The position numbers were made by a program, and so were the translations under genes. Below are positions 20,228 to 59,429 of a stretch of DNA of 64,000 nt, piece by piece. Each line of letters starts with the position of its first letter. Position 1 is the first letter of the stretch. This stretch comes from Schizochytrium sp. TIO01 (taxonomy: Eukaryota; Protista; Bigyra: Labyrinthulomycetes), in contig SMSO01000037.1 of assembly GCA_004764695.1 (NCBI GenBank), positions 1,774,747 to 1,838,746 on the forward strand, read 5' to 3'. Below the pieces are notes generated by a model, which saw only the letters and a program-made list of their open reading frames with translations, searched no databases and was not told the origin of the DNA.

Positions 20228-21640
20228 GCAACTCTTGCACTGCGAATCGATCTCCAGCACAGTCGAGCTCTTCTTTTCGAGCATCGTTAGCATCTGCAAC
20301 TTCTTCAACTCAAAGGTCTCGTTTCGGACCTTTTAACATCTTGACAATCAGTCAGTGGTTATCCTTGAACTAGGACCGAGCGCCTCGCGTGGTCAGAACC
20401 ACTGCCTTGACCCTCGGGCCTTTAGATAGAGCCCACTTTGCTTTATAGATAATGACGTTGCTTCAAAGGTTGTGGGGCTTCGATGAATCTTTGAACAGAT
20501 CTCGGCCTGCTGCGACTTGCGACGAACCTTAAACTCAGACACACACAAACGTCCCGCTTTCATCACATTCAGACGCATATCCATCGTACTCGAAGATATT
20601 TTTGCATGGGTTTGTTTCCACGCCACAACCAACAAATTTGCCCTGGCGCTAGCGTACACGGACAAGATGGACTACAGCGCAATCATTCTCACGGCGGTGC
20701 TTCCCATGAAAACATCGCGTGGATCACAACCAAGGTAGTGCGTACGATCCTGTAATTTTTTAAAATTGTTGGTCTCAATTTTTTTTACCACCACCTTTCT
20801 TTTTACTATCTTGCGAATTTTCTCACTTGGTCCAAGGAATTTAGTTTGTTGTCCATTTTCCGGATACTTGGTTCGCATTGATTTTGTCGACCGCCACTAC
20901 AAGTATAATTAATTGATACTAAGCTGGAATAAGATGTACCACGGTTTTACTTGGTCTCACCAGATGTAGTTTGTGTCAGCTCATATTTCATTTTTCTTTT
21001 GCCCCAATCAAACGAATTACCCACAGTGCTGTTTCATTTTCCCCTTCGCACTGATATGAAATAAATACCCTCCTTGGTTCGCTCACTACGTCCCAAACAT
21101 AAAAGGAAAACCTTGTTCGATTCTGTGCTATTTGGGACCACTACCAGGCATTTTGGAAAGAAACGTTGACATTTCTTTGTTTAGTTTTGCTAGTTTCTTG
21201 GCATCATGACCTTTCGAATCTACTACACGGCTTTGGCTCAAATAACGGAAAGGAAACGACAAAGAACCTAAACACTACAAAGTCTCCGTGGCACGCTTCT
21301 CGTACATACATGACTGAGTAGCTCTTCGCTTTTTACTCTTTTTTTTTTTTTTCCTTTGTTCCTTCTCGCAAAATCTACGTCAAATCCTTCTTTGCATGCT
21401 TCTTCTTCCCAATCTGTTATGAAGGAGTGCTGCAGCACGCGTACGAACAAAATCTTGCGTAATGGCAACATCAACACGGGTGTACATTGCAGTGCAGAGT
21501 CGTATATTTCGATTTCGCTTTGATTAATTTTTTCTCAAACTGGATAGTACTTGGGTAGTCACTTTCCTAAGGTAGGTACCCATTTTCGTGAGAACGGTAG
21601 AACAGCCCACCAAAACTCCAACACGAAGGAACGCCACGCC

Positions 21641-22975
21641 ATGGTGCTCGTGACCGTGCCTTCAGACGGAAGCCTGCGTGGTTCACTGCGCTCTCGAAAC
21701 GGCCGCGAATTCCTCGTACATATCACGGCGCCGCAAACGTTGAACTCCGAAGGCCATGACACGGACTTCGACGCAGCAGCATGCACCGACAAGAGGCGTA
21801 AAGTTGCGACAAACGGAGCAGCGAAAGCGCTCAACAAGCTTGGCCCACGACAACTCTTTGGGGACGCAGAACTACTTCAGCTCCTGCGGCCACACAGCGA
21901 TCTTGTTAAACTCAGACTTGAGCAAGCTGGCACCTCTGCAGAAATCCTCGAGAAGGATTTGCTTGAAATCCTTGAGCACGCAATACGTGATTGTGAGCAA
22001 AGCCATTTACTAAATGGAAAAGAACCCTCACCATCAAGAACAGCACAGACCATCGATAGAACAAGCTCGGCGCAATTGCAGTTTTGTAAACGCGTTGTTG
22101 AAGACATTGAAGCCTTAGGATGGGACCAGGTCATGCGCATCTCTGAAGACATGCGCAGCCTTGATCTTTTAGTCAAAGATGAAGCAGGCCGTGAGCATAC
22201 ATTACACGTCAACTTTCCCTCAAATTATCCACAGCAATCCCCCTCACTTTCGGCATCTGTGCCGGAAGCCTTTCAACAAGATGCAACCAGGGATACCTCT
22301 ATGCGAGACTCGCGAAATAACCTTACTCGATCAAATAACGTGCATCTTCCTGGGTTGCGTGGCCTTGTTGCTCAATTTCAAGATAAATTGCGATCCTTTC
22401 AAGGCGCGTGGGCTGAGTTGGATGATTTGGATGCCAACACATGGGTTCTTGATCCTGTCGAACCAAATTATAGTATCATGTATCGTCGCATCGCTTTAGC
22501 CAAGCACTGTTCAATGCAAGTGCGAATTTCAATTGAGGCGCCACGATCAGTTTGTGAGTGTCAGTTCATGGGCTCTGAGGCTGCTTTAGCTCCCTTTCGC
22601 AAGCGCTTCAATCGTAATTTGCGCTCTTGGAATCGGAGCGCAGGCGTGCGTTCGAATTTGCTGCGAGTGCTTGAGATCTCTGAGTTTCCGCAAAAGGACG
22701 CCAAGGAGATTGGTGAGCAGCAGGAATGTGGTGTTTGCTATTGTGTTCGCCTTCCTATTGAAGATCTTGAGGTTGATGCAGAAATTTCAACGCGCAACAA
22801 AAATGAGTCAATACTTCCTGACTGCATTTGTCCCAATCCCAAGTGTTCACGAGGTTTTCACCCAGCTTGCTTACGTGACTGGTTTCAGTCTCTGCCAACT
22901 ACACGCCACACATTTGACACCATGTTTGGCACATGCCCATATTGCTCGGGGCCTATTAGTGTTCTCACTGGCTAA
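21641..22975 (+). CDS. FANCL: E3 ubiquitin ligase FANCL
   Basis: Motifs GWDQV, DEAGREHTL, FPSNYP, LDDLDANTWVLDP and RRIAL. C-terminal RING CGVCY…CPNPKCSRGFHPACLRDWF…FGTCPYCSGPI. First ATG is 21641. Confidence 0.92.
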   Translation: MVLVTVPSDGSLRGSLRSRNGREFLVHITAPQTLNSEGHDTDFDAAACTDKRRKVATNGAAKALNKLGPRQLFGDAELLQLLRPHSDLVKLRLEQAGTSAEILEKDLLEILEHAIRDCEQSHLLNGKEPSPSRTAQTIDRTSSAQLQFCKRVVEDIEALGWDQVMRISEDMRSLDLLVKDEAGREHTLHVNFPSNYPQQSPSLSASVPEAFQQDATRDTSMRDSRNNLTRSNNVHLPGLRGLVAQFQDKLRSFQGAWAELDDLDANTWVLDPVEPNYSIMYRRIALAKHCSMQVRISIEAPRSVCECQFMGSEAALAPFRKRFNRNLRSWNRSAGVRSNLLRVLEISEFPQKDAKEIGEQQECGVCYCVRLPIEDLEVDAEISTRNKNESILPDCICPNPKCSRGFHPACLRDWFQSLPTTRHTFDTMFGTCPYCSGPISVLTG

Positions 22976-25012: not shown

Positions 25013-26341
25013 ATGACGAGCAACCCAGCGGACCAAAGTTCTTCAGCGCCGTGGAAAGGGGACGAATTCGAGGAGTGGAAAGGTGGAGGACCGACATCAT
25101 TGCTGGACTCTTCTCCGTTGACTTCCCTAAACGCGGATCAAGATGACTTATTGCGGGTCCCTGGAATCGCAGCTAAACCCCACATGCTGCTGGGCGATGA
25201 CCACGAATTTGTTGGGAATGGCAAGTCAGCAACCTCACTACTCACGCATGATCTTGAAGTTAGAACTTTTACGAAACCTACAGACTGCTCCGTCTGTGGA
25301 AAACTATTGCTGGGATTAAGGAAACAGGGTCTCGCTTGTAAAAAGTGCGGTGCTGCTGCCCACAAAAAGTGCGCTGAGCTATTGGATGTCGAGAAACCAT
25401 GTGAGTCGCAAGGAGAATTCGAGCATGAGTGGATGTTGGGCCCTCCGATTCATGAGTTTGCATTAAAAACATTTACTTCGCCAACAAAATGTAAACTGTG
25501 CCACGAATTCCTTCTAGGTATCTTTCAGCAAGGCCTTGAATGCAGAATTTGTAAAGCCGTGGTGCACAAAAAATGCGCGAACCAGTACAGCTCTACAGTA
25601 AAGAGCTGCAAGCCACCCGCGCCCGAAGAGACATCTCCGCGTCGCGCCTTAATTAACGTGCAAACCATCCCAGCCTCAGATGCCAAGCCTGATAACAAAG
25701 TATTGAGCCACTCAGAACACGAGCCTCAGCATCAGTTCCATGAAGCTCCGAAATTGCAATCCCAGTCCAAACCTCTTCAGCAAAGGCCTCCGCCACCCCC
25801 TCTTTCTCGCCCCCCACCGCCTCCGCACTCGCCACCACCACCCAGCCCACGATCCTCACCTTCATCACCCCTTCGAACGGCGGCGGCAACTTCCTCAAGC
25901 CCATCCTGTATAACATCGACGTCTCGCCCTCCTGCTCCAAAACGGGTGCCACCTCCTCCACCACCTCGAGCTTTTGATAATGTTACGGTGGCAAATAACA
26001 ACCCAACACCTGCTTTCACGTTAGACACTCTGGAGCAGAGGTTGGGAAGCTCAGCAACACAACTTCGGGAACGAATGAATCGTCTCGATTCGGATTGGTC
26101 CGAAACAAGCACTCGTTTAGCTACGCAACTCGCTGCTCTAGATAACAAAATCGAGGATTCTATGAATGACGCCAATCTGAAACTCCAGCGCCGCATGGAG
26201 TACATTGAACAGAATGGAATTGCCAATACTCTCGCTCTCGGAATTCGAGAACAAACAAAACGGGCAGTCGCTGCAATTGATAGTTTGTCATCTAGAGACC
26301 TTTTTAAGGATTCCGAGGAAAAACAGTACATAAGCCTTTGA
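25013..26341 (+). CDS. Tandem C1 (DAG/phorbol-ester-type zinc finger) protein with proline-rich and coiled-coil regions; probably the 5' part of a frameshift-split gene
   Basis: Two H-x12-C-x2-C…QG…C-x2-C-x4-H-x2-C…C domains at about 25247-25402 and 25451-25608, then poly-Pro tracts and heptad-like helices. Confidence 0.8.
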   Translation: MTSNPADQSSSAPWKGDEFEEWKGGGPTSLLDSSPLTSLNADQDDLLRVPGIAAKPHMLLGDDHEFVGNGKSATSLLTHDLEVRTFTKPTDCSVCGKLLLGLRKQGLACKKCGAAAHKKCAELLDVEKPCESQGEFEHEWMLGPPIHEFALKTFTSPTKCKLCHEFLLGIFQQGLECRICKAVVHKKCANQYSSTVKSCKPPAPEETSPRRALINVQTIPASDAKPDNKVLSHSEHEPQHQFHEAPKLQSQSKPLQQRPPPPPLSRPPPPPHSPPPPSPRSSPSSPLRTAAATSSSPSCITSTSRPPAPKRVPPPPPPRAFDNVTVANNNPTPAFTLDTLEQRLGSSATQLRERMNRLDSDWSETSTRLATQLAALDNKIEDSMNDANLKLQRRMEYIEQNGIANTLALGIREQTKRAVAAIDSLSSRDLFKDSEEKQYISL

Positions 26342-27218: not shown

Positions 27219-29469
27219 AGCTCTTGATTTTTCTCTATTTTTTTTACTAAATTTAAAAATGAATGAATTTTGTACACGTATACGCAGATACCTCTTGAAC
27301 GCTAATATTCTGTATAGCAATAACTTTCCACTCAATGCAAAGTTTACAAAGTAAGATGAGTTGTTTGACAGAGAGTATGCGAAAAAGCAAGATAAATTCG
27401 TGCATGAGTATGTTTCATGTATCGTATTAGCAACCGCTGTATGTTAGGGACTAAAGACATGCGATGCTTGCAAGACTTTAAGAAGTATGCATCTAAGGCG
27501 CTAGTTGTTTAATCATTGGAAAGATGCAAGCCGACTGTCATCAAGAGACTTTTAACTGCATCCTCTCAAGGCGCAAAGGCCCAAGGTCACTTACGCAATT
27601 CAGCGGGCAAAACGTCAGCAACATAGAGTTCTAAAATCAGAGCAGGTTTTGCAAAGTCTCCCCTGGCTTTGAATGCGTAGGCTGTGCAACAGCAACATTG
27701 CGCGAAAACACCATTGAAAGGAGTTTTGAACTCGGTTGAACAGACTCGAGAGCACTCCTTTTACAGTTCGTGGAGAGCACGGCGATAAGATGAAGGGGGG
27801 CATTACTTTCTTACTGAGCCATGCCGGAGATTGTTTCTGCGCTATAAGTAGTAAGTACTATGTGGATAAGGCCTACTCCTATCGACCTTTCACTCTTGTA
27901 AAAACTAGCACCAGAGCGTATCAGATGGGTAATAATAAAACACTTGAGAGTTTCTTTGGGTTGGTAGTAGAAAGAACCACACCTTTAAATTCCCACTGCA
28001 ATGCGGCGCCTGCCCTGTCCATCGCTACTGGTCGGCATTGACCAGTCCCTAAGCATCACAAGCCTCAACGAGAAAGGAATTCGAAAACTGTACCTGCAAA
28101 ACGTAGGAATTCCAGTCGGCAGATCGGTGGGTGGGTGTTAGGCAGGTAGGAAGGTACCGACTGTATTCGCCAAACTTACTCACAGCCGCCGTTCGCGGTA
28201 CGGCGAGCCCGTGGTTCCTGCGCAGCGCTCCTTCCATCGCCAGGCACACGCTTCCGCCTCCAACAAGTGCTCTACCTCTAGAGGCTGAGAGAGGGATGGA
28301 TGGAGGCGCCGCGCCCTTGAGGCCAGGTCCCGCAACGTCAGTGAGTGCACGACCGGCCATCACGAGCCCAGGTCCTCACGCCGACCTCTGCGGACGCCGA
28401 CGACCACGCCTCCCAGGCCCCGCTGCGCCAAAAGGGAGGGTGTCTGCCGTGCCGAGGGCGGGAACGGCCTCCAAGCGTGGCGCAAGTCACGAGGCGAACG
28501 AAGCCTCTCCGCTGTACGACACACACAGCGAGACCATAGTGGTGTAGTACACACCCCGTGCCGGGATCCAAGATGGAGCCCCAGTTTACAAACATGCATG
28601 CATACATACATACATGCATTCATTTACAGGTACATCTCGGCGGGCAAACTTCGCAAGGGTTCTCTCTACGCTCTGCTCGCGCGTGCTTCCCGGCCTGTAC
28701 CATCGCGGGAGGCCGCAGGGTTCCGAGGCGGGGCTCGCGGCGGCGGCTCGCTCGCTCTCTCGGTCGCTGTCCGCCCAGGGTCGCTGCTGGAGAAGGGCGG
28801 CGATCGCTTGCATCCATCTCTCGCTGGCCCGGCCGGTTTCCGGCAAGGATCCCGACCCTCGCTGGCCGCGCAGGACCTCCTTACTCCAAAGGCAGAGCCC
28901 CGGCTGCCTCGTCCTCCTCCTCGCGGGCGAGCCTCGTGCCGCCAAAGCAAAATGCGCCCCCTCGAAACGTTCTGGCCAACGATCCAGCCAACTAGGCGAT
29001 TCTCAAAATGTCCTGCACGAGAACGTGGCCAGCGAGGCTTTCCGCCTCCGAGTGCTCTTGCACTACTCCCCTGAGACATGCCTGGCCCCGCCTCTATCCT
29101 TGCCGCTTCCCGCGAGCCCGCCTCCAGCCAGAGCTCCTTGGCGCCTCTAACCAGAGCCCGTGCCTCGATCCCCGCGTCTTGAGCAATCTCGTCCTTCGCA
29201 TTCCTTCGCAGTCCTTCGCCGTCCTCGCCCCGTCCCCGCCTTCCGCCAGTGCCCACACCTCGCGCACACTTGTGAGTGCACACCTGCCTCCGGGGACCCC
29301 TCCTGCGCTATGGAAGGGACTCGGAAGCGGCCGGGCCGCTGCTCTGTCTGATGGTTTGGATGCCCTCGCTGCTCCTGGAGGCCGCGCAAAGGACCCCTTC
29401 TGCGACGCCTCCCTCTCTTTTGATGCAAGCAGCGCGATGCCAGAAGGGCCAGGGAAACGGGCCTCCTGT

Positions 29470-29527
29470 TGAATGAATGAATGAATGAATGAATGAATGA
29501 ATGAGTGAATGAGTGAGTGAGTGAGTG
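29470..29527. repeat. (GAAT)n/(GAGT)n microsatellite
   Basis: Read directly. Confidence 0.92.
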
Positions 29528-30338
29528 AGCTGGCGATCGATCGGTCGTTCAGTTTCGCGTTCTTTTTGTTCTGTGGGTTGCGAAGTTATGTACCTTAGAA
29601 AGAAAGAAGAACTCGAAGGGGAAAAAAAAGAAAAAAGAAAAAAAAAAGAAAGAGAAAAGAAAGAAAGAAAGAAACGCATGGCCGAGTCCTCGAGGAGGCA
29701 GCGAGCCGGTGCAAGTAGGCTATAGCGAAACCGCAAGTGGGTTATACGCAGGCTACTATAGACTATTTCAGGGATTGCCTATTATTACCTGGGAGCAGAG
29801 ACCTGAAAGAAAGTGAAAGAGCGGACGGCCAGGCAGGGAGGGGGACTGCAGGGAGGCGTCTGAGGGAGGGACCCCGAGGAAGAAGGCTTAGGCGGGGTCT
29901 GCGAAAGAAAAGCAGCCAGGATTGTGGCGTGGGGAAGAAAGGAAGTAGGGGTGGTTAGGTGAAAAGGTAGAAGTAGGAGACGAGGCGATGGGGGCATTGT
30001 GGAGAGAGATGGTGAGTGTTCAAACGAATTCTGAAGCAATCGATCGATCCACCGCTCCGACGAGGCAAGCAAAACCTGATCCATCAGCGATCGATCAGTC
30101 GATTGATCGATCAACGATCCACCTGGACGCCTGCCTGCGAGGCGAGCAAGAGCGGCCGCGCTAGAATTGCGGAGAGCAAACGAGACTCCGTGGGAGTGCA
30201 GCGGTTGATCCTTCTGAAGAGAAGGAAGTAAAAGGAGAAGCAGAAGAAGAAGAGATATCCTTAGATTCTTGAAATTCTTGAACTTAAGACAGAAGGCATT
30301 ATAGCCATAATATCTGCTCGTAATTTGACACAGAAACC

Positions 30339-32177
30339 ATGTCGGTGAAACCTGAACTTAGCAGGCATGCAATGCTTGTGGTGATTCTCCTGGCATGCTT
30401 GGCGGTGCCTGGATTTGCCTTTCTTGATGGTGTCGTGGATGCTGTCAAGACAACCATTGCTGGAGCTACTGGGCGTACTGCGTATGCACCCTCAAAACGT
30501 GCAGAGGTGGAGCACGCGGAGGATGTTGTGGTCGCAGATTTTAGCGCACCGCAGGGAAGCCTTCCTAAGGTGCGTCTTGGTTCCCGCGTCATCGATCTCG
30601 TTAACGCTCTGCACTTTGATGACCTCATGCAAGATACCCCGGACGAGATTCGCCCTCCTAGCGTGGTAGTCTTTTACGACAGCAACGATAATACATGCAT
30701 GGAAAAATACGATAGCTTAGGCTGGGACAATCTTGCTGAGTCCAAGCTTCCTGCTCGTGAGCGTCTCATGACTGCTCGTTACGATATGTATGCTGCACCG
30801 CGTCGTGCATGGTACAAGTTTATTCCTGAGATGGACCTTGCTAAACGTTTCAACGTGAAGCAATGCCCTGAAGTGGTTTTTGCACCACGCTCCTGCGATG
30901 GTCTTACTGAGTTTTGCCATCGTGAGACTGATGGAGATGGCATCCAGTACATGGGATGCGAAAACTTTAAGGAGTCCTGCGAGAATACCAAGATCTGGGA
31001 CGGCAAGGGCGACTTGAAGACATGGATCATGGACAATGTCGAGTCGGAGGGCGAGCCTGCTGTGAGCCGCTTCATGGGATCCATGGAGGCCCAAGGTGAG
31101 TGGATCCTCGGACGCGACCGCACTACCACCGACAATCAGATGCGTAACCTTTATCTTTCCCCTGCATTCCCAGCATTCACAAAGCGTGGTTTCAAGGCAC
31201 TTCCTATTCCGGATGAGCTTATGAAATGGCTTGATGGCTTTTATGAGCGTAATGAAAAGCACCGTCGCACGGAGTTTTGGGAAGCGGAGTCCACCCAGAT
31301 GGGCTTTCACGAGACCCCGACTTCGTTCTTGGATATGGATCGTGAGCGCTTTGAAAAGGAACGCATGGCCAACCTCTATCTTAAACCCCTTGTTGAAGAG
31401 TGGGCTGGTCTCCCTGAAGGCACTCTTGAACTTACTGCCTTTTACGGAATGCGTGAGTACCCGGATGAATCGATCCTCAAGAACCACGTGGATCGCATTG
31501 ACACCCATGTACTTTCTGTAACCATCTCTGTTCGTAAGCTTGACGAGGCTAAGTCTGCTGCTCACCCATGGCCTCTTGAGGTTGTTCAATGGTCTGGTGA
31601 TCATGTGCGCTACGAGCACCCTGGTGGTACCATGGTCCTTTACGAATCTTCCAAGCTTATGCACGGTCGCCCGTTCAAGAACAAGGGTGGTACCCATGTC
31701 GGTTGCTTTGCTCATTTTAAGCCAAAGACTATGCACAGCACGGACGCTAGCCGCTGGGAAGATATCGTCGCTACAGCCCGCTCTAACCAGCGCCGCAATT
31801 CACAGAACACTGCGTACAGATCGCGCCCGTCGGTTGAGCCCAACGATGTACACTTTTCCAATGTTGACTATGGTGAGGGCACTCGCTGGCGTCTCAAGAC
31901 TGAAGGTGAGAACGAGGTCCGCAATGACCAGGTACCCGTTACTTTTCATAACAAGCACGACAAGACCCTTGCTGTGTATTGGCAGGGCCATGATGGCGGT
32001 CCTGTTCACCAAGGTACGGTGGCTCCTGGTGCAACTTTTGACGTTGGTTCTTACCGTGGCCATCAATTCTTCTGGTCTGCTGTTCTTCCTGAGCATGAAG
32101 GTTCCCCGACGGCAATGCCCGGTGGTCGTATCACTGTGGAAAAGGGCCGTACGGTTTACGCTTACACCGCAAAGTAA
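30339..32177 (+). CDS. Secretory thioredoxin-like + 2OG-Fe(II) dioxygenase + VHL-beta-like protein (paralogue A)
   Basis: Signal peptide (LVVILLACLAVPGFA). Trx-like VVVFYDSNDNTC…LAKRFNVKQCPEVVF. Dioxygenase YGMREY…HVD (31485-31493)…WPLEV…MVLYESSKLMHGRP (His at 31662). C-terminal VTFHN…VYWQGHDGGPVHQGTVAPG…SYRGHQF. Confidence 0.85.
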   Translation: MSVKPELSRHAMLVVILLACLAVPGFAFLDGVVDAVKTTIAGATGRTAYAPSKRAEVEHAEDVVVADFSAPQGSLPKVRLGSRVIDLVNALHFDDLMQDTPDEIRPPSVVVFYDSNDNTCMEKYDSLGWDNLAESKLPARERLMTARYDMYAAPRRAWYKFIPEMDLAKRFNVKQCPEVVFAPRSCDGLTEFCHRETDGDGIQYMGCENFKESCENTKIWDGKGDLKTWIMDNVESEGEPAVSRFMGSMEAQGEWILGRDRTTTDNQMRNLYLSPAFPAFTKRGFKALPIPDELMKWLDGFYERNEKHRRTEFWEAESTQMGFHETPTSFLDMDRERFEKERMANLYLKPLVEEWAGLPEGTLELTAFYGMREYPDESILKNHVDRIDTHVLSVTISVRKLDEAKSAAHPWPLEVVQWSGDHVRYEHPGGTMVLYESSKLMHGRPFKNKGGTHVGCFAHFKPKTMHSTDASRWEDIVATARSNQRRNSQNTAYRSRPSVEPNDVHFSNVDYGEGTRWRLKTEGENEVRNDQVPVTFHNKHDKTLAVYWQGHDGGPVHQGTVAPGATFDVGSYRGHQFFWSAVLPEHEGSPTAMPGGRITVEKGRTVYAYTAK

Positions 32178-33111
32178 GTAAGCTTATATGCAGCTAGCTT
32201 ACAGTTTACTCTGACCGTCCAACTTCTTTTTTCCTAATCTCTCTTGGCAAAACTTACCAAGTCCGTGCAAAACGAGATATCAGACATATTTGACATTGTA
32301 AATTGGTCATTCTCATAGACTCGTATTCTATGTTCGGAAGTACTCGAGAAAGAAGTGGCAAACCTGTACTTGTTTTAAACCAAATTAGTAATGCTGAAGC
32401 TTCTCTCAAGAGAAAGCTCATAAAAACTTTAAATATCATTTATCAGATGAATAAAGACATCTCATACATCTGTTCGATTTCATTTCCTACCATGTTTACA
32501 GAATGATGGCTTCTTTTGATTTTTCTTTTTGATATTATATATATATATATATATCATGAAAGAAAGAAAGAGAGAAACGCTCGTCAGTCAAACTAAAAAC
32601 TTCTTAAACACCTCAGAGTATAAAAGAAGAATTCAATCTCGTCACAATATCCTTGACCTCCAAAAAGTCCTAGGATCTGAGTGACTTAGTAACAGTCTTA
32701 TGTACGCCACAGCCTTTGTTCAAGGAGGTTATGTAAAGGAAAAGGTGAAAACATTGTTTGTAGACAACTTTATAAATCTAAAGGCCTGGTACACATTGGA
32801 ATTCCGTCAAGAAGTTTGTCGTTGGGTATACATTACAAGCCAAATGAGTGCAAAATGCGAAGCAGTTGCCCAGTTAATATGGCCCTTTTTAATTACGTAT
32901 CCACCTAGCGCAAATAATGCAAAGTGTATGTAAGAGGTTAAGAACTTTCCCAAGGTTGAATGAGGTAGGCAAACGATGCAAACAGATTCATGGAGTGAAG
33001 AGGCGGCAGCATTTCTGAATCATTTCCAATGAGTTGAAAAAGAAGTTTACGAGGACACGGCTACAACTGAACTACGTGCCCTCGTATTGGGAAGGGCGAT
33101 TGCTGCAAGTT

Positions 33112-35115
33112 TTACTCCTGCTTCAGCTTTTCACGAACTTTGTCAGCAAACTGTGTTTGTGGCTTGCGATGGGTGCCGTCGCGTGTCAAAGAGTACTTCA
33201 CAACAGATCGGCCCATCTCCATCGAAAATGTTCCATCCGGAATCGGATCGGTGCTACCTGCTTCACAGAATGCAAACTGGTGATCACGGAAAGTGGTGAT
33301 TGTGGTTGCGGTTCCCCGGGCAAGAGTTCCTTGGTGAACCGAAGGACCATTCGGGTTAAGCCAGTAAAGATCAAGTGTACGGTCAGCTTCATTCTTGAAG
33401 ACCACCGAGAAGCCACCATTCGCATCAGCAGCGCCCTCATCCTCATCTGCCTCATCACCATCAGAGCTAAGGTGGGTCCACTTGGTTCCCTCGCCAAAAC
33501 TTTTGCTGGCGTACTCGATGGTCGAAGCAGGGGGTTCCACTGGGTCAGTTTGACGGAAGGTTCTGTGTCCTGTAAATGCAGATTGGTGAGCACGTGCAAC
33601 GCGTGCAATGTCGTCCCAGCGGCGCGTCATATCGGATCCTGCAGACTTCGGCTTGAAGTGCACAAAGGCGCCAAGATGGTCACCTCCGAGGTTGGGATAC
33701 GGCCGTCCATGAGGAAGCTTTGAGGACTCATAGAGCACCATGGTGCCAGCCGGGTGCTCGTAGCGGACATGGTCACCATTCCAGTCAATAACTTCAAGTG
33801 GCCAAGATGCGTTAGTGGGCCACTCACCCTTAGCAACGGTGATAGTTACCGAGAGAACGTGAGAGTCGATGCGATCAATGTGCGAGCGCAGCCAGTTATC
33901 GTGCTTGTAGTGGCGCACACCGTAGAATGCGGTGAGCTCAAGATCGCCCATCTGCGACCACTCCTCCACAATAGGCTTAATGAACTTATTCACCATGCGG
34001 TTGGCGTGAATTCTCTCACGGTCAAGGTCCGTGAACTCAGTCGGTGTCTCGTGAAAAGACATTTGCGTGGACTCAGCCTGCCAAAACTCCGTTCGTTTGT
34101 GGCTCTTGTTACGTTCCAAGAAACCAAGGAGCCACGTCATGAACTCTCCAGGGACGTCGGTAGCTTTGAATCCGCGAGGCGTGAACGCCGGAAAGGCCTG
34201 AGAGAGGTAGAGATTACGCATCATTGTGTTTGAGGTGGTAAACTCTCGGTCATGCATCCATTTTCCCTGCTCGCGGTAGGTACGGAGAAACTTGGAGAGT
34301 TTAGGACGACCCTCTGCAGCAACTTTGTCTTTAATCCAACTTGCAAGATCTCCAGTACCGTCCCATTTGACGGTGTTAGTGCACTGCTCAACAAAGTTCT
34401 CGCAGCCGATGAGCTCGATCGAGGGTGCCTCGGGGTCCATACCGCGACTGCACCAATCAGTCCACCCATTACAAGAACGGGGTACGAAAACAACTTCGGG
34501 GCACTGCTTGACATTAAAGCGTTTCGCAAGATCCATCTCAGGCGTAAACTTGTACCAGGCACGGCGGGGTGCAGCGTACATGTCGTACCGAGCTGTGAAG
34601 AGCATATCACGGCTTGGAAGCTTAGTCTCGGCGATGTTGTCCCAACGCAAAGCGTTGTACTTTTTCACGCACTCGCTGTCACGCGAGTTGTAAAAGACGA
34701 CCACTCCAGCTGGGCGAATGTCGTCTGGTGAGTCCTGAAGAATTGAATCAAAGTGAATTCCGTTCACAAGATCAGCAACACGGCCACCCATAGTCACGGA
34801 AGGAAGGTCCATGTCGCTGTAATCTGCAATCTCGAGGCCAGATGCATGAGGAGGCTTTGGTCTTTTGGATTCTGCAGCAGGGTTTTTCGCGGTACTCGCC
34901 TGTACGACCCCAGGGCTTGGGCCAAAGAAGAATGCCTTGACGTCATCCAGAGAGAATGCAGAAGTAGAAACCACCGCCAGTGCCAAAACTACGATGGCAA
35001 TCACAGTTGCAGGCGCGATGGACTTCTTAGCCTTGCCTTTATTGGCGCTCGCCATTGTGGCTGCAGACCGCGCCTTCGCCACCTCGGCAGTCGAAGGCTT
35101 ACTGTTCTTGGCCAT
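33112..35115 (-). CDS. Membrane-anchored thioredoxin-like + 2OG-Fe(II) dioxygenase + VHL-beta-like protein (paralogue B)
   Basis: Colinear with paralogue A. Basic N-tail then TM (VIAIVVLALAVV), Trx-like segment, HID…LPHGRP, and C-terminal VVFKN…LYWLNPNG…GTLARG…TFRDHQF. First ATG is 35115; the ORF track starts at TTG 35199. Confidence 0.85.
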   Translation of the reverse strand: MAKNSKPSTAEVAKARSAATMASANKGKAKKSIAPATVIAIVVLALAVVSTSAFSLDDVKAFFFGPSPGVVQASTAKNPAAESKRPKPPHASGLEIADYSDMDLPSVTMGGRVADLVNGIHFDSILQDSPDDIRPAGVVVFYNSRDSECVKKYNALRWDNIAETKLPSRDMLFTARYDMYAAPRRAWYKFTPEMDLAKRFNVKQCPEVVFVPRSCNGWTDWCSRGMDPEAPSIELIGCENFVEQCTNTVKWDGTGDLASWIKDKVAAEGRPKLSKFLRTYREQGKWMHDREFTTSNTMMRNLYLSQAFPAFTPRGFKATDVPGEFMTWLLGFLERNKSHKRTEFWQAESTQMSFHETPTEFTDLDRERIHANRMVNKFIKPIVEEWSQMGDLELTAFYGVRHYKHDNWLRSHIDRIDSHVLSVTITVAKGEWPTNASWPLEVIDWNGDHVRYEHPAGTMVLYESSKLPHGRPYPNLGGDHLGAFVHFKPKSAGSDMTRRWDDIARVARAHQSAFTGHRTFRQTDPVEPPASTIEYASKSFGEGTKWTHLSSDGDEADEDEGAADANGGFSVVFKNEADRTLDLYWLNPNGPSVHQGTLARGTATTITTFRDHQFAFCEAGSTDPIPDGTFSMEMGRSVVKYSLTRDGTHRKPQTQFADKVREKLKQE

Positions 35116-35845
35116 CTCGGCCTTCCGAGACAGGGAAACCTGCAAGACGCCGCTCCTAGGCGTTCGCTCGCCCCGCAACCCTGTTCCACCCGCCTTCAAC
35201 GCCCTCGAACCAACTGCCTTTGCGTCGAGGATTCGGGGATTCGTGAACTGGCCGCTTCGAAGATTGCTGTATTTAGTTCGAGTACCCCTTTTGTTTTATC
35301 TTCAGTAAAAAGACTTTCTTTGTACCTTTCGTCAATAAACAAAAAACTTTTATTTATATTTCTTTCTCTCTCTTTACTCTCTCTTCGTCTTCTACAATAG
35401 CAGTCCGATACCCTTAACTATAGCAGTGCCCACCAGCAGGCTCCAGTAGGCTCAGAAATGAGGGTCACAGAATTATGCGCCACCGCTCTTCCGACGGCTG
35501 CAAAGACCGTGAGTTTGGACTCGAAGAAGCTCAATGAGCCCTGCCAAGCCGGTCCTCTCCGCCTGCCTTCACGCCAGCTCCTCCCTCCTGTGTCTGCCTG
35601 ACCTTCTGCACCATTTGTTCGTTTTCATTGGATTGACCTACTACTCCTCAATATGGGCACTACAATGCAATGCAATGCAATGCAATGCAATTCACAGATA
35701 AATAATTATAGATAAATAGTTATATAGACAGATAGAGGGTGGGTTTGTGATACATACAATCCATCCACTGCTCGCTTCGCCTTCTTGACTGTCCACATCT
35801 TCAGAGCGTGGCATGAAACGCACGAGGCCGTGGCCCCGAGGAGGC

Positions 35846-35846
<1 letters not shown>

Positions 35847-35893
<47 letters not shown>
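35847..35893. repeat. (GCTT)n microsatellite
   Basis: Read directly. Confidence 0.93.
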
Positions 35894-35894
<1 letters not shown>

Positions 35895-36855
35895 CGATTG
35901 TGCGGTCTTCGAGATCGGTTTCTCTGATTATCTGTTTCTTTGTTTATCTGTTTCTTCGTTTATCTGTTTCTTTGTATATCTGTTTCTTTGTATATCTTTT
36001 TTTTTGTATATCTGTTCAGGATTCCTAAGCGCGACCTACGAGTTCATAGCAGGCGTCGAATGCCTGTTTCGCCATGCAGAACTACGCAAAGCCAAACCAA
36101 AGCCAAAGCCAAAGCCCAAGCACCAGAGCCGCAGAGACGACGCGAGGCGCCTCCACAGCGCGGAGGTCGAAAGGATATGCGTTGAGCTTGAGAGCCGCAG
36201 AGCTGACAGCAGTTCTGGCGATAAATAGCCTGATCTCGGATGACGGGCGTCAATGTCAGGAATCGCGATGACGATTATGGAGTACCATGGAATTCTAAGG
36301 CTCTCTCTGATGGATAAAGGGGAACTCAACTCCGATTCTGCGCAGTCATCCCAATCTCGAAAGCACCTCGGTCCGCAGGATTGAGGGGGCCTCGAGTGGG
36401 ACTGCGAGCGTCGCAAGGGTCGGTGAGGAGAGCATTGACGCACCGGCAGAGCTGGGACCTGAAGAAGCGAAGGCGGCAACGCAATAGTTTAGAGACTACA
36501 TTTCTTTTGTGATCGTCGCTTAGTTAATTGCCATGTTTCTTTTAAGCTCTGCTTCTTATTATTAATAAGAAGAAAGGTACTAGGGGAACTCCTAACAAGG
36601 GAGACCCTAAGGCCACGCATGAGAAACGGGTAGGAGTACATTGGCGCAAACCGCCAAAGCAAAACTGACAGCAGCGTCGTGGAGACCAAAATTGCCTGTT
36701 AGCGTGCACGGGGCTGAGAGCTGCTGCTGAGCTAACGAGCACGTGGAAGGTTGAAAGCAGTTTCCTTGACAGCAATCGTGGATTGACTCTCTAGACTTTG
36801 GGGTAGATCTCCGCGTCGTTGGTTGGGTTGTCGAGTCGGATTCCGTTGATTCAAG

Positions 36856-37881
36856 ATGACCACTGAGTTTGAGGACGTGCAAAAGTTCTGGGAAAGAGCA
36901 GGCCAAGATGCAGTTGGTGCAGCGTGCCAAAGCGATGCAATTTTGCGTTTTTTTGACAAATTCTCGGTCCTTGAAGTCATCGAAGGCAAGGTTCTTAAGT
37001 TTGATGTGGACAAGATCGCCGAGCTTCAAGACAAGGTCGATAGTCTTCCCGCAATGAACGGTGATGATTCTTTGCGCAAGATCTTTGCTCCCGGTGCCAC
37101 CAAGAGTGCAACTGTGCGTAATCACAAACTCGTCGCTGTTATCAAAGAGGGCTTGACCAACATCTGCGAGAGCGGCGAAGTCCCCAGCACTGGAGGATCA
37201 GCTTCTGCCCCGGAACCTGCATCAGATTACTCAGCTCCTGAAGGGCAGCAATCCCAACAGGCTTCGTACATCCAGCTCGCTAGGGACCTCCCGGAAGGCG
37301 CTCGAATCAATGTTCGATGCTCTCCAGACACCGATGCCGAGGTCGTTGGTACCATTGGCGAGGACGATGTTATCGCTATGATGAGCATGCAGGGCGATTG
37401 GGCTTGCATTGACTTTGACGGAAGCACTGCGTATGTCCTCACTCGTATGGGTGACCGTGCTTTGCTCGTGCCAATGAACAACTCACAGCCTGCTCCGGTA
37501 GCCGCTAAGGAGAACCAGGGCGCCGCAAACCACGCTGCTGCTGCTGCTGCTGCTGCAGCTCCGATGAAGCCTCCTCAACCTGTCATGCAGCAGCAACATC
37601 AGCAGCAAATGCCACAGCATGCACAGCCACCACGTGTCGCCCCCCCAACTATGATGGCTCACCATGCTCCAAGCATGCATCAGCAGTACATGCCCCAGAG
37701 TTCCATGCACCCGATGGCAATGAACAGCATGAACGAGGATCCTTCCAGGCCGGTATCTTTTGAGGAATACAACCAATTGCGCTTTCGTGTACAGCAGCTT
37801 GAGGCTGATATGCGGGCATTTCGTATGCTTATGCGTTCCTGGAGCTTGGACACTCCCTCTGCTGCTGCGGCTCCTTATTAG
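36856..37881 (+). CDS. Unknown protein with a bacterial-type SH3 (SH3b) domain, a Q/P/M-rich linker and a C-terminal coiled coil
   Basis: Clean 341-aa ATG ORF with coding-like codon usage. INVRCSPDTDAEVVGTIGEDDVIAMMSMQGDWACIDFDGSTAYV fits the SH3b pattern NVRxxP…VGxL…G-W…G++. Confidence 0.75.
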   Translation: MTTEFEDVQKFWERAGQDAVGAACQSDAILRFFDKFSVLEVIEGKVLKFDVDKIAELQDKVDSLPAMNGDDSLRKIFAPGATKSATVRNHKLVAVIKEGLTNICESGEVPSTGGSASAPEPASDYSAPEGQQSQQASYIQLARDLPEGARINVRCSPDTDAEVVGTIGEDDVIAMMSMQGDWACIDFDGSTAYVLTRMGDRALLVPMNNSQPAPVAAKENQGAANHAAAAAAAAAPMKPPQPVMQQQHQQQMPQHAQPPRVAPPTMMAHHAPSMHQQYMPQSSMHPMAMNSMNEDPSRPVSFEEYNQLRFRVQQLEADMRAFRMLMRSWSLDTPSAAAAPY

Positions 37882-41323: not shown

Positions 41324-42517
41324 TTAGTGGTAGAGGTTGTTCTGGATGTCCGGCATGCGAACAACGGAGGGCATCTCGGACTCAAGGCGGCGTCCGTTGG
41401 AGGACATCTTGCCGGTGGTGTAGATGTCGGAGGCAAGTTCGCTGTCGTCAGGGACGGAAGACTCCTTGGCAGCCTTGAGTGCTTTCTGGACCTCGGAGCG
41501 GATGTTCTTCTCGATCTCCTTGAGTTCATCCTCAGAGGCCCAGCCGGCCTCGACAATGCGCTTCTTGACGAGCTCAATGGGGTCACGGCTCTGGCGCACG
41601 TTAGTGACCTCGTCACGGGTACGGTAAGAGATACCAGGGTCAGACATGGAGTGACCGTGGTAACGGTAGGTCTTGAGCTCAACGTAGATGGGGCCGTTGC
41701 CAGCACCGGTGTACTCCTTACAGAACTTGATACCTTCACGTACGGCAAGGACGTCCATACCGTCAATGAAGAGACCAGGGATCTTGTTACCCTGCTTGTA
41801 GTACTCGGTGATGTACGAGGAGCGGTTCACGCTAGTACCCATACCGTACTCGTTGTTCTCACAGCCGAAGATGACCGGGAGCTTCCAGAGGGCAGCCATG
41901 TTGGCGGCCTCCCAGCACTGGCCCTGGTTGGCGGAACCGTCACCGTAGAGGGTGATGGAGCAGTTCATGGCTTCGTCAGCCTTCTGGTTGTAGGCGTGGT
42001 AGAAGGCAAGGCCAGCACCGATGGGAACCTGGGCTCCGACAATGGCGGCACCACCGTAGAAGTTGGTGGCCTTGTTGTACATGTGCATGGAGCCTCCCTT
42101 ACCGCGGGAGCAGCCGTTGCGGAAGCCGAAGAGCTCCTCGAAGATCTCCTGCACGGGCACACCGCGCACGTAGGCCATACCGTGGCAACGGTAGGTGGTG
42201 ATGACGTCGTCATCGCGGGTGAAGGCAGCCTCGATACCCTGGGCGATGGCCTCCTGGCCGTCATACAAGTGGCAGAAACCGCGGATGTTGCGGGCCTTGT
42301 ACTCACCGTCGGCGGCGATCTCCATGCGGCGGATGGTGTACATGTTGTGGTGGTACTCCATGAGCTCCTCCTTGGTGGCCTCTGCCTTCTGTGCAGGGGG
42401 CTCCACGTGGTGGCCCTTGAAGTCCACCGGCAGCTCAAACGTGTAGCTGCTCATGCTGCGAGCGGCACGCGGGGCGAGGCCGCTGCGGCCAGCCAGAGAC
42501 TTGAAGGCGACCTGCAT
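41324..42517 (-). CDS. PDHA1: Pyruvate dehydrogenase E1 alpha subunit, mitochondrial
   Basis: Motifs IRGFCHLYDGQEA, GKGGSMH, TPP-binding GDG…NN and YRYHGHSMSDPG. The presequence starts MQVAFKSLAGRSGLAPRAARSMSS at ATG 42517. Confidence 0.97.
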   Translation of the reverse strand: MQVAFKSLAGRSGLAPRAARSMSSYTFELPVDFKGHHVEPPAQKAEATKEELMEYHHNMYTIRRMEIAADGEYKARNIRGFCHLYDGQEAIAQGIEAAFTRDDDVITTYRCHGMAYVRGVPVQEIFEELFGFRNGCSRGKGGSMHMYNKATNFYGGAAIVGAQVPIGAGLAFYHAYNQKADEAMNCSITLYGDGSANQGQCWEAANMAALWKLPVIFGCENNEYGMGTSVNRSSYITEYYKQGNKIPGLFIDGMDVLAVREGIKFCKEYTGAGNGPIYVELKTYRYHGHSMSDPGISYRTRDEVTNVRQSRDPIELVKKRIVEAGWASEDELKEIEKNIRSEVQKALKAAKESSVPDDSELASDIYTTGKMSSNGRRLESEMPSVVRMPDIQNNLYH

Positions 42518-43756
42518 TTTGTCTGCTTCTTCCGCTTCTTCTTCTTCGGCTGCTGCTGCTGTTGCTGCGATCGATTCGCTCGCTTGTCTCGGGTCTGCTG
42601 CTCGTGCAGACGGAGATGTAGATAGGCACACAGAGATGCTGCTTTGCTGACGCCGCCGACGCACTCGCACAGCGCCGCTACAAAAACAAAACAAATACAA
42701 AAAGACAAGCGATTCTAAACAAAGGATGCGTAGGACTTCCTAGGCACCTACTAGCCATATCCTCAACTAACAGAAGCTGAGTATAATGTAAACAGAAAGA
42801 ATCACTTTGGCGCTTTTACAATGAAAAAGTAAATCAATTGAAAAGTCAATCATTCATTCATTCATTCGTTCATTCATTCATTCACTCTTTCTTCTGCTTT
42901 CTCAATTGAAAAACAAATTACTTTTCTTTCTTCAATTATGCATTCGCATATTTTTTCAATTTGTTTTTTAAAGTTGAAAGGAAAGCCTTGAGGACAACAA
43001 TAAGAGCAAAAAGGAAAACCTTTTCATATCTTTGAAATACTTTTAAACCTCACTTTCTAAAAGGAGACGAAAAGGAGATGAAAAGAAAAGAAAAGAAAAA
43101 AAGAAAAAGAAAAAAAAAGGGGCGAACGGAGAGATATGGAAACACTGTTAAGAACTCTGCTACTTTCCAATTGTCGGGATTTTTAAAATTAAATAAACTT
43201 TTCAGTCAAGCCATCTTTTAAATTAAAAGACATCCAAAAGAAAAATGGCTTTATGCAGAGAGCTAACTTGAGGTTCAATATAAGGTCGGTTATCCGCAGG
43301 CAGGACGAGCTGATCTGAACAAACAGGTTTCTTTCTCTCCCTGAGCCTTTGGTCTCTTTCGTCTCTCTTGTTTGATCAGCTGCTTGTTCTCAGAGATTGA
43401 AGGCATGGAAAGCCAAAAGAGCAGAAGAAGCAAGTGCCAAATAAGGTACTGCGCAGCATTTCATGAAAAAGGGCGAATTCAGGAGTTTAATTCTTTCACG
43501 AAAACAATAATAATGTTTTAACCCTTTTATTTAATATAGATTGAAAACGAGGAGAGGAGGCCAAAGGCAAGGAAGCCACAATGCAAACAAACAAACAAAC
43601 AAACAAACATACAAATACAACCTCATCTTGCCTGGCTCCCCTTGGAAGCGTGGCCATTGTGGTGTCTTGATGCCCTTCGGAAGAGCACAGAAGAGCCCCT
43701 CTGAGTATGCCCCGACGAAAGATAGATACACTACATCCATTCGACTTCTCATAAGT

Positions 43757-52165: not shown

Positions 52166-53767
52166 ATGAGCTCTGGCATGTTTCTGCTCCTCGAGGCCGC
52201 CTCTGGCTATGGCCTCTTTGAGGTTATCGAGACCGACGAGGTGGCCCTCCAGAAGGAGCAGGTCCAGGCCTCCGTGACTGAGCTCGAGCGCTTCAGCAAG
52301 CTCGTCAAGCTCAAGGCTTTCCAGCCGTTCTCCAGCGCTGAGAATGCCCTCGAGAACATCATGAAGGTGTCTGAGAACCTTGTGCCCGAGGACCTTGCTA
52401 CCTTCCTCACCAGCAACCTCCCCAAGGGCAAGAAGATGAAGTCCGAGGGTATGTTCCTCGGTGTCACCGCACCCAACTTGGCCTCTGCCATCCGCGAGAC
52501 CACTACCATCCCCTGCAAGTCCGATGAGACCGTGCTCGAGCTCCTCCGTGGAGTCCGCACCCACCTTGCCCGCTACGTGAAACAGCTCGACGGAGGTGCC
52601 TCCGAGAAGGCGCAGCTCGGTCTTGGACACAGTTACTCTCGTGCCAAGGTCAAGTTCAACGTGAACCGTCAGGACAACATGATCATCCAGAGCATCTGCC
52701 TCTTGGACCAGATGGACAAGGACATCAACACCTGCGCCATGCGCGTCAAGGAGTGGTACTCTTGGCACTTCCCCGAGCTTCAGAAGATCGTGTCTGACTC
52801 TTTCATCTTCGCACGCCTCGTGCAGTTCATTGGCGCTCGCAACAACTTGAGCGAGGAAAAGCTCGAGGGCCTCACCGAGATCACCATGGACAAGGAGATC
52901 TCTGAGCAAATCCTCGACGCCGCTCGTGCCTCCATGGGTTTCGACTGCTCTGACATCGATATGCTTAACCTCAGCCAGTTCGCCGACCGCGTCGTCGAGC
53001 TCGCCAAGTACCGCCGCGAGCTCCACACCTACCTCCTCGAGAAGATGTCCGTCGTGGCACCCAACCTCGCGGCCCTCATCGGAGAGCCCGTCGCCGCCAG
53101 ACTCATCTCCCACGCTGGCAGCCTCGTAAACCTTGCAAAGTACCCGGCCTCCACCATCCAGATTCTCGGTGCTGAGAAGGCTCTCTTCCGCGCCCTCAAG
53201 ACCAAGGGCAACACCCCCAAGTACGGCCTTATCTTCCACTCCAGCTTCATCGGACGTGCTGGAGCCAAGAACAAGGGCCGCATCTCCCGTTACCTTGCCA
53301 ACAAATGCGCTATTGCCGCCCGCATTGACTACTTCGCAGAGGTCCCTAACCCGGCTTACGGTGAGAAGCTCAAGGACCAGGTCGAGGAGAGACTCGCGTT
53401 CTACGACACCGGAGCCACCCCGAAGAAGAACCTTGATGTGATGAGAGAGGCAGCTAAGGAGGCCGCCGCCCTTGTGAAGGAGATGGGCCTCTCATCAGAC
53501 GCCGCGACGCCGAAAAAACGCAAGCGCACAGACGAGGACGACAGCAGCGACGAAGAGGAGGATAACAAGAAGGCCGACGACAGCAGTGACGAAGAGGAGG
53601 AGGCCCCCAAACTGAAGAAGGACAAGAAGTCTAAGAAGAGCAAAAAGGAAAACGGTGAGACCCCGAGCAAGTCCGCCAAGAAGGAAAAGAAGGAAAAGAA
53701 GGAGAAGAAGGACAAGAAGAAGGACGACGACGCACCCAAGAAGAAGAAGAAGAAGACGAAGGAGTAA
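52166..53767 (+). CDS. NOP56: Box C/D snoRNP protein NOP56
   Basis: LGLGHSYSRAKVKFNVNR, MRVKEWYSWHFPEL, AKYPASTIQILGAEKALFRALKT, KGRISRYLANKC and a KKE/D tail. The LGHSYSRAKVKF motif favours NOP56 over NOP58. Confidence 0.95.
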   Translation: MSSGMFLLLEAASGYGLFEVIETDEVALQKEQVQASVTELERFSKLVKLKAFQPFSSAENALENIMKVSENLVPEDLATFLTSNLPKGKKMKSEGMFLGVTAPNLASAIRETTTIPCKSDETVLELLRGVRTHLARYVKQLDGGASEKAQLGLGHSYSRAKVKFNVNRQDNMIIQSICLLDQMDKDINTCAMRVKEWYSWHFPELQKIVSDSFIFARLVQFIGARNNLSEEKLEGLTEITMDKEISEQILDAARASMGFDCSDIDMLNLSQFADRVVELAKYRRELHTYLLEKMSVVAPNLAALIGEPVAARLISHAGSLVNLAKYPASTIQILGAEKALFRALKTKGNTPKYGLIFHSSFIGRAGAKNKGRISRYLANKCAIAARIDYFAEVPNPAYGEKLKDQVEERLAFYDTGATPKKNLDVMREAAKEAAALVKEMGLSSDAATPKKRKRTDEDDSSDEEEDNKKADDSSDEEEEAPKLKKDKKSKKSKKENGETPSKSAKKEKKEKKEKKDKKKDDDAPKKKKKKTKE

Positions 53768-58380: not shown

Positions 58381-59429
58381 GACGTTGCACGCGAGTGACA
58401 CAATGGTGGATGTCCGCGATTCGTAGTCTTCTACTGTCGCGATCCGCGCTTGGCGAACCGCACCAAGACCGGCAGCCCTGGGCCTTCTGGCCACAGCTAC
58501 CTCTCACCCTGGTCTCGACCGGACGTTCCTCTCAATGCGAAGCGAACTGCTGTTGCTTGGGCTACAAGCAGGACAGCTCCACTCGGAACTGTCAAATTCC
58601 ACAAGATGTCACAATCAGCCGGCACCTGGAGTGCTTGGCTTACTCTGTTTACGGCTAGGTTGCCTCTCGATACCCCCGCTTGCTTTGCTTGCTTGCTTAC
58701 TTGCTTGCTTGCACAAGCACCCAGCTAACGAAGTAACGAACTCACTCACTTACGCACGCTCGCACGCACGCTCGTGACTTGGTTTAAGGTCAGAGCTAAA
58801 TAGACTCTAAAGCGCTCGCTGGCTTATGAGTCAATTCGGCAGCTGCAAACAAAACCCGGCAAACCTGGCAACCCGCACTTATCGCGTATCAGCCGTCGCC
58901 GCCACAGCGCTGTCTCCGATCCGGAAGCTGCAGGAACAAGGCTCTGCCTGCACCAAACGCGGCCACGCTGCGAACCCAGTGAACCGCGCGCGTGCAAATT
59001 GGATTGCAATTCGCAGTATAGGTAGGTAGGTAGGTAGTGCCTTTATTCTGTGGAAGAAAGTAAAAAGGATGAAGGTGTACTTTTCAGTAGGACTGTCTAT
59101 GCGCCTCCTAGCAATGGCCTGCTGGCACTTGCACCTCTACTGCTAGTGATACGATTAGCTGGCGCTTAGTACCTCCAGCACAGGAAAGAGTTCACGGAAG
59201 CAGAGCCGAGATGTGCAGACGGCTTTCTTTCTCTGGCGATGTCAAAACTGCTGCTACTGCTGATACTGCTGATACTTTAGAAGCAATCGCCTCTGGGTTG
59301 GAGTCCTCCACGTATAGAGCTTTGCGTGCAGCCAGAGTGCACGTTCTTGGGGACTCGAGTCAATCGACCGCCGATTCTTCCACCTCAAAGGAGTTTCTCT
59401 TTGAAAGTTTTACTTTGTTAATGGGAAGG

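Follow-up and report, generated by a model that had tools for sequence, protein, structure and literature searches.

VHL-beta-like domains joined to divergent Fe(II) oxygenases in Schizochytrium sp. TIO01: a candidate reader-writer pair for hydroxyproline

Prolyl 4-hydroxylases (P4Hs) of the secretory pathway include the alpha subunit of the human collagen enzyme (C-P4H), which is partnered by PDI as beta subunit, the algal Cr-P4H-1, and the plant type II membrane P4Hs with a ShK/Tox1 domain. The accessory domains of known P4Hs, such as the peptide-substrate-binding (PSB) domain of collagen P4H, bind substrate and not product. In animal oxygen sensing, the prolyl hydroxylases PHD/EGLN and the von Hippel-Lindau protein (pVHL) are separate cytosolic proteins acting on HIF, and pVHL recruits elongin C/Cul2 through its alpha domain; bacterial PPHD and Dictyostelium PhyA belong to the same comparison group. 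pVHL is treated as an animal, at most holozoan, part of the HIF oxygen sensor (PMC9618697), and the role of VHL-beta domains outside animals has been stated as unknown (PMC7736814). Here we describe two neighbouring genes, A and B, of the labyrinthulomycete Schizochytrium sp. TIO01 (assembly GCA_004764695.1), in which an Fe(II) oxygenase domain and a VHL-beta-like domain are parts of one polypeptide. The genes lie in a stretch of 64,000 nucleotides of contig SMSO01000037.1 (positions 1,774,747 to 1,838,746), referred to below as the window.

Genes A and B are convergent, with a spacer of 934 bp, and can be read without introns (Table 1). Their products are 51% identical over the full length and are thus paralogues, as a sequence-only reading of the locus had described them; the end that it gave for B, 35115, is the first ATG of that open reading frame (ORF). 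A public gene model, P0001, is identical to A but starts at Met12 (30372) and shares its stop. Each protein consists of a membrane anchor, a thioredoxin-like domain, a divergent Fe(II) oxygenase and a homologue of the VHL beta domain. We give a probability of roughly 0.5 to the reading that A and B are lumenal or surface enzymes with a VHL-like peptide-binding arm, in which a reader is coupled to a writer and hydroxylation is processive. The arm would attach to proline-rich proteins of the secretory pathway or cell surface, probably at residues that are already hydroxylated. Once docked, it would keep the catalytic domain on the substrate, and neighbouring prolines of repeats would be modified processively. 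A and B are presumed to be prolyl hydroxylases that depend on 2-oxoglutarate (2OG), with proline as their substrate, and to bind hydroxyproline (Hyp) or proline peptides.

The C-terminal domain of A and B is truly homologous to the pVHL beta domain, as four independent lines of evidence indicate. Both C-termini align to human pVHL without gaps, over 47-55 residues, as the sequence-only reading had noted for A, and VHL is the top PDB sequence match for each. The Pfam VHL model (PF01847, cut-off 21 bits), against which a comparison had been suggested, matches B with 27.3 bits (E 3.7e-6), and with 31 bits when the whole genome was scanned in six frames; it does not match A by itself, and it matches 15 of 37 homologues (best E 9.5e-7). 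For a profile of the domain, A and B were aligned with eleven metagenomic relatives (alignment A2). Among 177,635 PDB sequences this profile found VHL alone to be significant (E 6e-4), and a profile of the full-length family retrieved only VHL, weakly (E 0.24), and no oxygenase. AlphaFold modelled the full-length protein with a predicted local distance difference test score (pLDDT) of 88 and a predicted TM-score (pTM) of 0.82, and the C-terminal domain alone with a pLDDT of 93. The domain is modelled as a VHL beta-sandwich and, in a Foldseek search, pVHL filled all of the top 50 places (E about 5e-5). The sandwich can be superposed on pVHL, with a structural alignment that spans pVHL residues 69-154 only. 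An accidental resemblance between beta-sandwiches was ruled out: in a scan independent of Foldseek, pVHL led the next-ranked fold by 2.5 Z units, and the sequence models give the same answer.

The elongin-binding alpha domain of pVHL, with its BC box, is absent, as had been claimed; A ends with the beta domain, and its residues 530-612 are predicted to form strands only. A role as ubiquitin-ligase adaptor is excluded because there is no alpha domain and because the proteins are predicted to lie on the wrong side of the membrane. A classical VHL acting in trans was also considered and rejected, a Pfam VHL scan of the whole genome having returned gene B only.

The pocket of the domain can be compared with pVHL residue by residue. 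The Hyp site of pVHL comprises Trp88, Tyr98, His110, Ser111, His115 and Trp117; Ser111 and His115 form hydrogen bonds with the Hyp hydroxyl, and Tyr98 with the Hyp carbonyl (PMC9528729). The residues N538, W548, Q558, S571, H575 and F577 of A correspond to pVHL N78, W88, Y98, S111, H115 and W117. In B the equivalents of W88 and H115 are kept as well, and those of S111, Y98 and W117 are Thr, Gln and Phe; all of these equivalences had been assigned correctly from the letters alone. The domain of A and B thus differs from that of pVHL in having Gln for Tyr98 and Phe for Trp117, and in being covalently joined to an oxygenase. The 147 best database representatives yielded 354 instances of the domain. 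Among these, position 78 was Asn in 94%, position 88 Trp in 90%, position 111 Thr or Ser in 95%, position 115 His in 94%, and position 117 Trp or Phe in 95%. Ser/Thr111 and His115 are the best conserved polar positions. We favour recognition of the product because the residues that contact the hydroxyl in pVHL are these best conserved polar positions, and because the partner enzymes make Hyp.

The central domain of A and B is an Fe(II) oxygenase of the P4H/PHD superfamily and is very divergent within it. The iron triads are intact, as had been noticed at the outset: H383, D385 and H442 in A (HVD at 383-385, HGRP at 442-445) and H440, D442 and H497 in B (HID at 440-442, HGRP at 497-500). The HxD...H triad shows no variation across 37 aligned family members. 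The domain has the double-stranded beta-helix fold, and its best Foldseek matches were a PiuC-like oxygenase, Pseudomonas PPHD, Dictyostelium PhyA, a Trichoplax PHD and PHD2 (E 9e-8 to 1e-5).

One hydrophobic segment is found in each protein by hydropathy, and it is N-terminal, in line with the secretory targeting proposed before. From this segment and the six invariant Cys of the domain that follows, A and B are predicted to be lumenal or at the cell surface, within the secretory pathway, rather than cytosolic or nuclear. The thioredoxin-like domain contains six invariant Cys and no CxxC; weak matches to Thioredoxin_2 occur in 5 of 37 homologues (best E 0.01). Collagen, plant and algal P4Hs resemble A and B in being secretory Fe(II) oxygenases with an HxD...H triad, a type II anchor, an accessory domain and a thioredoxin-fold module. 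However, the accessory domain is a VHL-like sandwich in A and B and a helical PSB domain in collagen P4H, and the thioredoxin-like part stands in cis and lacks CxxC, unlike the separate PDI beta subunit of C-P4H. In contrast to the two proteins of the animal system, A and B each combine both parts in one polypeptide that is predicted to be lumenal.

The fusion is not confined to A and B. In the 64-Mb genome the C-terminal domain profile detected six VHL-like domains, each of them on a P4H-superfamily oxygenase, although very divergent copies may escape such a search. The four further proteins, L023, L024, L025 and L026, show three domain orders other than that of A and B (Table 1). Three of them, L023, L024 and L025, are canonical collagen/algal-type P4Hs; L023 and L025 match the solved P4Hs of B. 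anthracis (1e-26), human C-P4H alpha-2 (5e-25) and Chlamydomonas Cr-P4H-1 (1e-23), and the ShK domain of L025 is like that of plant type 2 P4Hs. The oxygenase family PF13640 has 16 loci in the genome, 3 of which are VHL-fused. The 147 best representatives include 11 members of the A/B family and 14 of a second P4H family, which Pfam does recognise and which occurs with its domains in either order. The distinct oxygenase-linked proteins number 24, since one protein, P0180, has both oxygenase types, around two VHL-like domains. The fusion-counting profile was built from oxygenase-linked copies, so the oxygenase-linked share among the top matches is inflated.

An N-terminal VHL-like domain is present on 47 of 120 relatives of the ShK-P4H L025, from several protist lineages. 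These include proteins named as prolyl 4-hydroxylases in Hondaea, Thraustochytrium, Rhizochromulina (Ochrophyta) and Amorphochlora (Rhizaria), and PF01847 is absent from all of their precomputed annotations. The suspicion that similar fusions exist without annotation in other stramenopiles was thus well founded. The VHL-like domains of these relatives show the same pocket signature as the other oxygenase-linked copies. The survey of architectures across protists, proposed together with the original idea, gave at least four domain orders in several protist lineages and two very different catalytic sub-families. The recurrence of this fusion suggests that the making and the reading of hydroxyproline may have been linked since early times.

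What weighs against the reader-writer reading of A and B lies in the pocket, in the catalytic domain and in the company that the VHL-beta domain keeps elsewhere. Oxygenase-linked copies have Gln, Val or Ile in place of Tyr98, mostly Gln and never Tyr, whereas Tyr is the most frequent residue at this position in non-oxygenase copies; Phe occupies position 117 in 37 of 40 oxygenase-linked copies. This sub-signature, which sets these copies apart from pVHL and from many of the copies without an oxygenase, would suit a domain that recruits unmodified proline-rich stretches and releases them once they are hydroxylated. Such a domain would be a functional analogue of the collagen P4H PSB domain, binding substrate as the accessory domains of known P4Hs do. 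We regard this as unlikely, and it leaves hard to explain why the best conserved polar positions are Ser/Thr111 and His115, which contact the Hyp hydroxyl in pVHL (PMC9528729). Another caution is that F76 and W117 are also core-packing residues, part of the aromatic core of pVHL (PMC3688787). Because both sit in that core, their conservation may be structural, an argument that leaves out the polar Ser/Thr-His pair.

The central region was also compared with oxygenase models, as had been suggested. Neither A nor B matches any Pfam 2OG oxygenase model, and 4 of 37 homologues do so weakly (best E 0.011). When hhalign was used to compare the A/B catalytic domain with those of canonical P4Hs, the result was not significant, with a probability below 1% and a 19-column local match around HxD. 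Membership of the P4H family by sequence was dropped on the strength of that profile-profile probability. Many 2OG oxygenases come equally close to the A/B domain in structure, among them lysyl hydroxylase, ALKBH7, amino-acid halogenases/hydroxylases and the epimerase SnoN, so the fold does not point to one substrate. Moreover, an invariant His (His453 in A, 31695-31697; His508 in B, 33676-33678) stands where the Lys or Arg that binds the C5-carboxylate of 2OG is expected, about 10 residues beyond the distal His; the paralogue L026 has Tyr there. A and B differ in this from canonical P4Hs, and the canonical paralogues L023 and L025 retain the 2OG-binding Lys.

The substituted His, the lack of a sequence-level match to P4H families and the structural tie all favour a different chemistry, in which A and B are not prolyl hydroxylases, may not use 2OG, and act on a different residue or on something other than protein, the accessory domains serving that chemistry. 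This seems very unlikely to us. The local motif around HxD, R-x-Y...H-x-D, follows the P4H pattern; source databases label the orthologues 'Prolyl 4-hydroxylase alpha subunit domain-containing', a label taken here as given; and paralogues that share the VHL-like accessory domain belong to the canonical P4Hs. In addition, an invariant Arg two residues past the distal His (HGR) might, judging from its position in the sequence, replace the Lys or Arg in 2OG binding.

The third concern is the breadth of the domain family. The C-terminal domain profile retrieved 1867 proteins from 1.84 billion cluster representatives, 245 of them at E <= 1e-10. Many of the matches are strongly recognised by Pfam VHL (for instance, ten copies at E 1e-105). 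Most proteins have 2-3 copies of the VHL-beta domain, and proteins of about 2000 residues have up to 12. Partner domains in a sample of 113 included aldo-keto reductases (8), 2OG-FeII_Oxy_3 (7), ricin-type lectins (3), calpain (2) and DPP-IV (1), and a Paulinella protein has the domain order SAM-TIR-VHLx3. In the ESM Atlas the nearest clusters are named 'VHL beta domain-containing protein' and are mostly bacterial. The VHL beta domain is, in short, a widespread and promiscuous module of protists and many bacteria, occurring with aldo-keto reductases, lectins, peptidases and SAM-TIR as well as in long tandem arrays. Among the unusual architectures (P0066-P0070, P0080, P0096 and P0180) are also proteins with an aldo-keto reductase and two VHL domains, and proteins of roughly 1700-2000 residues with 8-12 tandem copies.

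Because the domain has so many other partners, its pocket may bind something more general than Hyp. Taken further, the VHL-like domain of A and B would be a generic beta-sandwich binder or spacer, with a glycan, a protein or a small molecule as a ligand unrelated to Hyp, and its presence on oxygenases would be due to the usual reshuffling of domains in secreted proteins. We find this improbable, given that all six copies in the genome are on P4H-superfamily oxygenases, that fusions of either domain order have turned up, involving two catalytic sub-families that differ greatly, and that the residues conserved are those of the pVHL pocket and not merely of the core. Bacterial and protist VHL-beta proteins, such as the retron type X accessory protein and the tandem arrays, belong to the same domain family as A and B and have other partners or none (PMC7736814); Phe117 and the lack of Tyr98 set the oxygenase-linked copies apart from them.

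The sequence-only reading had seen in the reader-writer fusion a Rosetta-stone link between the two halves of the animal oxygen-sensing pathway. This idea was strengthened by the exclusive linkage to P4H-superfamily oxygenases in the genome and by the recurrence of the fusion. A direct evolutionary link to the animal PHD-VHL pair would be only one possible reading, given that the VHL-beta domain is promiscuous and widespread. A speculative and rather doubtful extension is that the VHL beta fold originated as a Hyp-recognition module on secretory P4Hs, with writer and reader in a single chain driving processive hydroxylation of proline-rich wall or matrix proteins, and that animal pVHL is a later cytosolic offshoot that gained the alpha domain. 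If so, the PHD-VHL oxygen sensor would rest on a writer-reader logic older than HIF and animals.

Neither domain family is new, and automatic cataloguing already covers VHL-beta proteins of bacteria and protists, but most of the canonical P4H fusions are unannotated as such. In the literature covered, which excludes subscription journals, we found no description of a P4H-VHL fusion, of a thraustochytrid VHL, or of a role for non-animal VHL-beta domains. The recurrent fusion to prolyl-hydroxylase-type enzymes is thus a first contextual clue to the function of these domains. If the domain reads Hyp, A and B would be reader-writer enzymes for a protein hydroxylation mark, with a bearing on the origin of the VHL-PHD partnership, and small natural Hyp-binding modules (85 residues) could be supplied as tools. 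Failing that, a large family would still be defined by its conserved Ser/Thr-His-Trp pocket, with a ligand of another kind.

Table 1. Coordinates of genes A and B and their domains, of further P4H-VHL fusions in the genome (G000), and of neighbouring genes. Positions are those of the window, except for L023 to L026.
Feature	Position	Strand	Remarks
Gene A	30339-32177	+	Intronless ORF, 612 residues
A hydrophobic segment, signal peptide or signal anchor	30372-30428	+	Residues about 12-30, by hydropathy; model helix 6-20
A thioredoxin-like domain	30570-31058	+	Residues about 78-240; alternating beta/alpha, pLDDT >90
A double-stranded beta-helix Fe(II) oxygenase domain	31170-31733	+	Residues about 278-465; HxD 31485-31493, distal His442 31662-31664
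A VHL-beta-like domain	31926-32174	+	Residues 530-612
Gene B	33112-35199	-	ORF of 695 codons, intron not needed; likely start Met29 (35115) or Met49 (35055)
B single transmembrane segment	34954-35016	-	Lys-rich tail before the segment; type II signal anchor, by hydropathy
B thioredoxin-like domain	34303-34791	-	ORF residues about 137-299
B oxygenase domain	33640-34191	-	ORF residues about 337-520; HxD 33874-33882, distal His497 33709-33711
B VHL-beta-like domain	33184-33417	-	ORF residues 595-672; PF01847 match at residues 598-653
L023	G000:C35:2416704-2418377 (L023:1564-3237)	+	P4H, then VHL-like
L024	G000:C24:3033013-3034662 (L024:1588-3237)	+	P4H, then VHL-like
L025	G000:C36:4422113-4423726 (L025:2083-3696)	-	VHL-like, ShK, P4H
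L026	G000:C34:2056741-2058189 (L026:2584-4032)	+	Signal peptide, VHL-like, divergent A/B-type oxygenase
AP2-domain protein	1022-3172		Window neighbour
Mitofilin	7187-9148		Window neighbour
FANCL-like	21551-22975		Window neighbour
C1-domain protein	25013-26341		Window neighbour
SH3_3 protein	36856-37881		Window neighbour
Dehydrogenase E1 component	41324-42700		Window neighbour
Nop56/58-like	52166-53767		Window neighbour
PP2C	56497-58494		Window neighbour

The closest named relative of the protein, at 74% identity, is in the thraustochytrid Hondaea fermentalgiana, where both paralogues likewise lie on one contig (FCC1311_021912 and FCC1311_021902). On three metagenome contigs (L002:1148-1402 (-), L003 and L012) a member of the A/B family adjoins and converges with the gene of P0098, a shorter P4H-VHL protein of 478 residues. 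The gene neighbourhood seems to be conserved, since these three contigs and Hondaea keep such pairs together. Relatives of A and B also occur in MMETSP transcriptomes. Three NCBI records labelled Batrachochytrium salamandrivorans (BASA81/BASA82; P0034, P0036 and P0044) encode A/B-family members with 44-45% identity. The family is otherwise of labyrinthulomycete type, and these records may come from contaminated or mislabelled assemblies, or may show that it is more widely distributed.

The neighbouring ORFs of the window are ordinary eukaryotic genes with no evident connection to A and B (Table 1). The DNA flanking the gene pair (about 29300-30230 and 35780-36230) is simple-repeat-like, and its ORF translations consist of repeated short units such as FIHS and LACL. 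GC content rises to 0.60 at 28-30 kb of the window.

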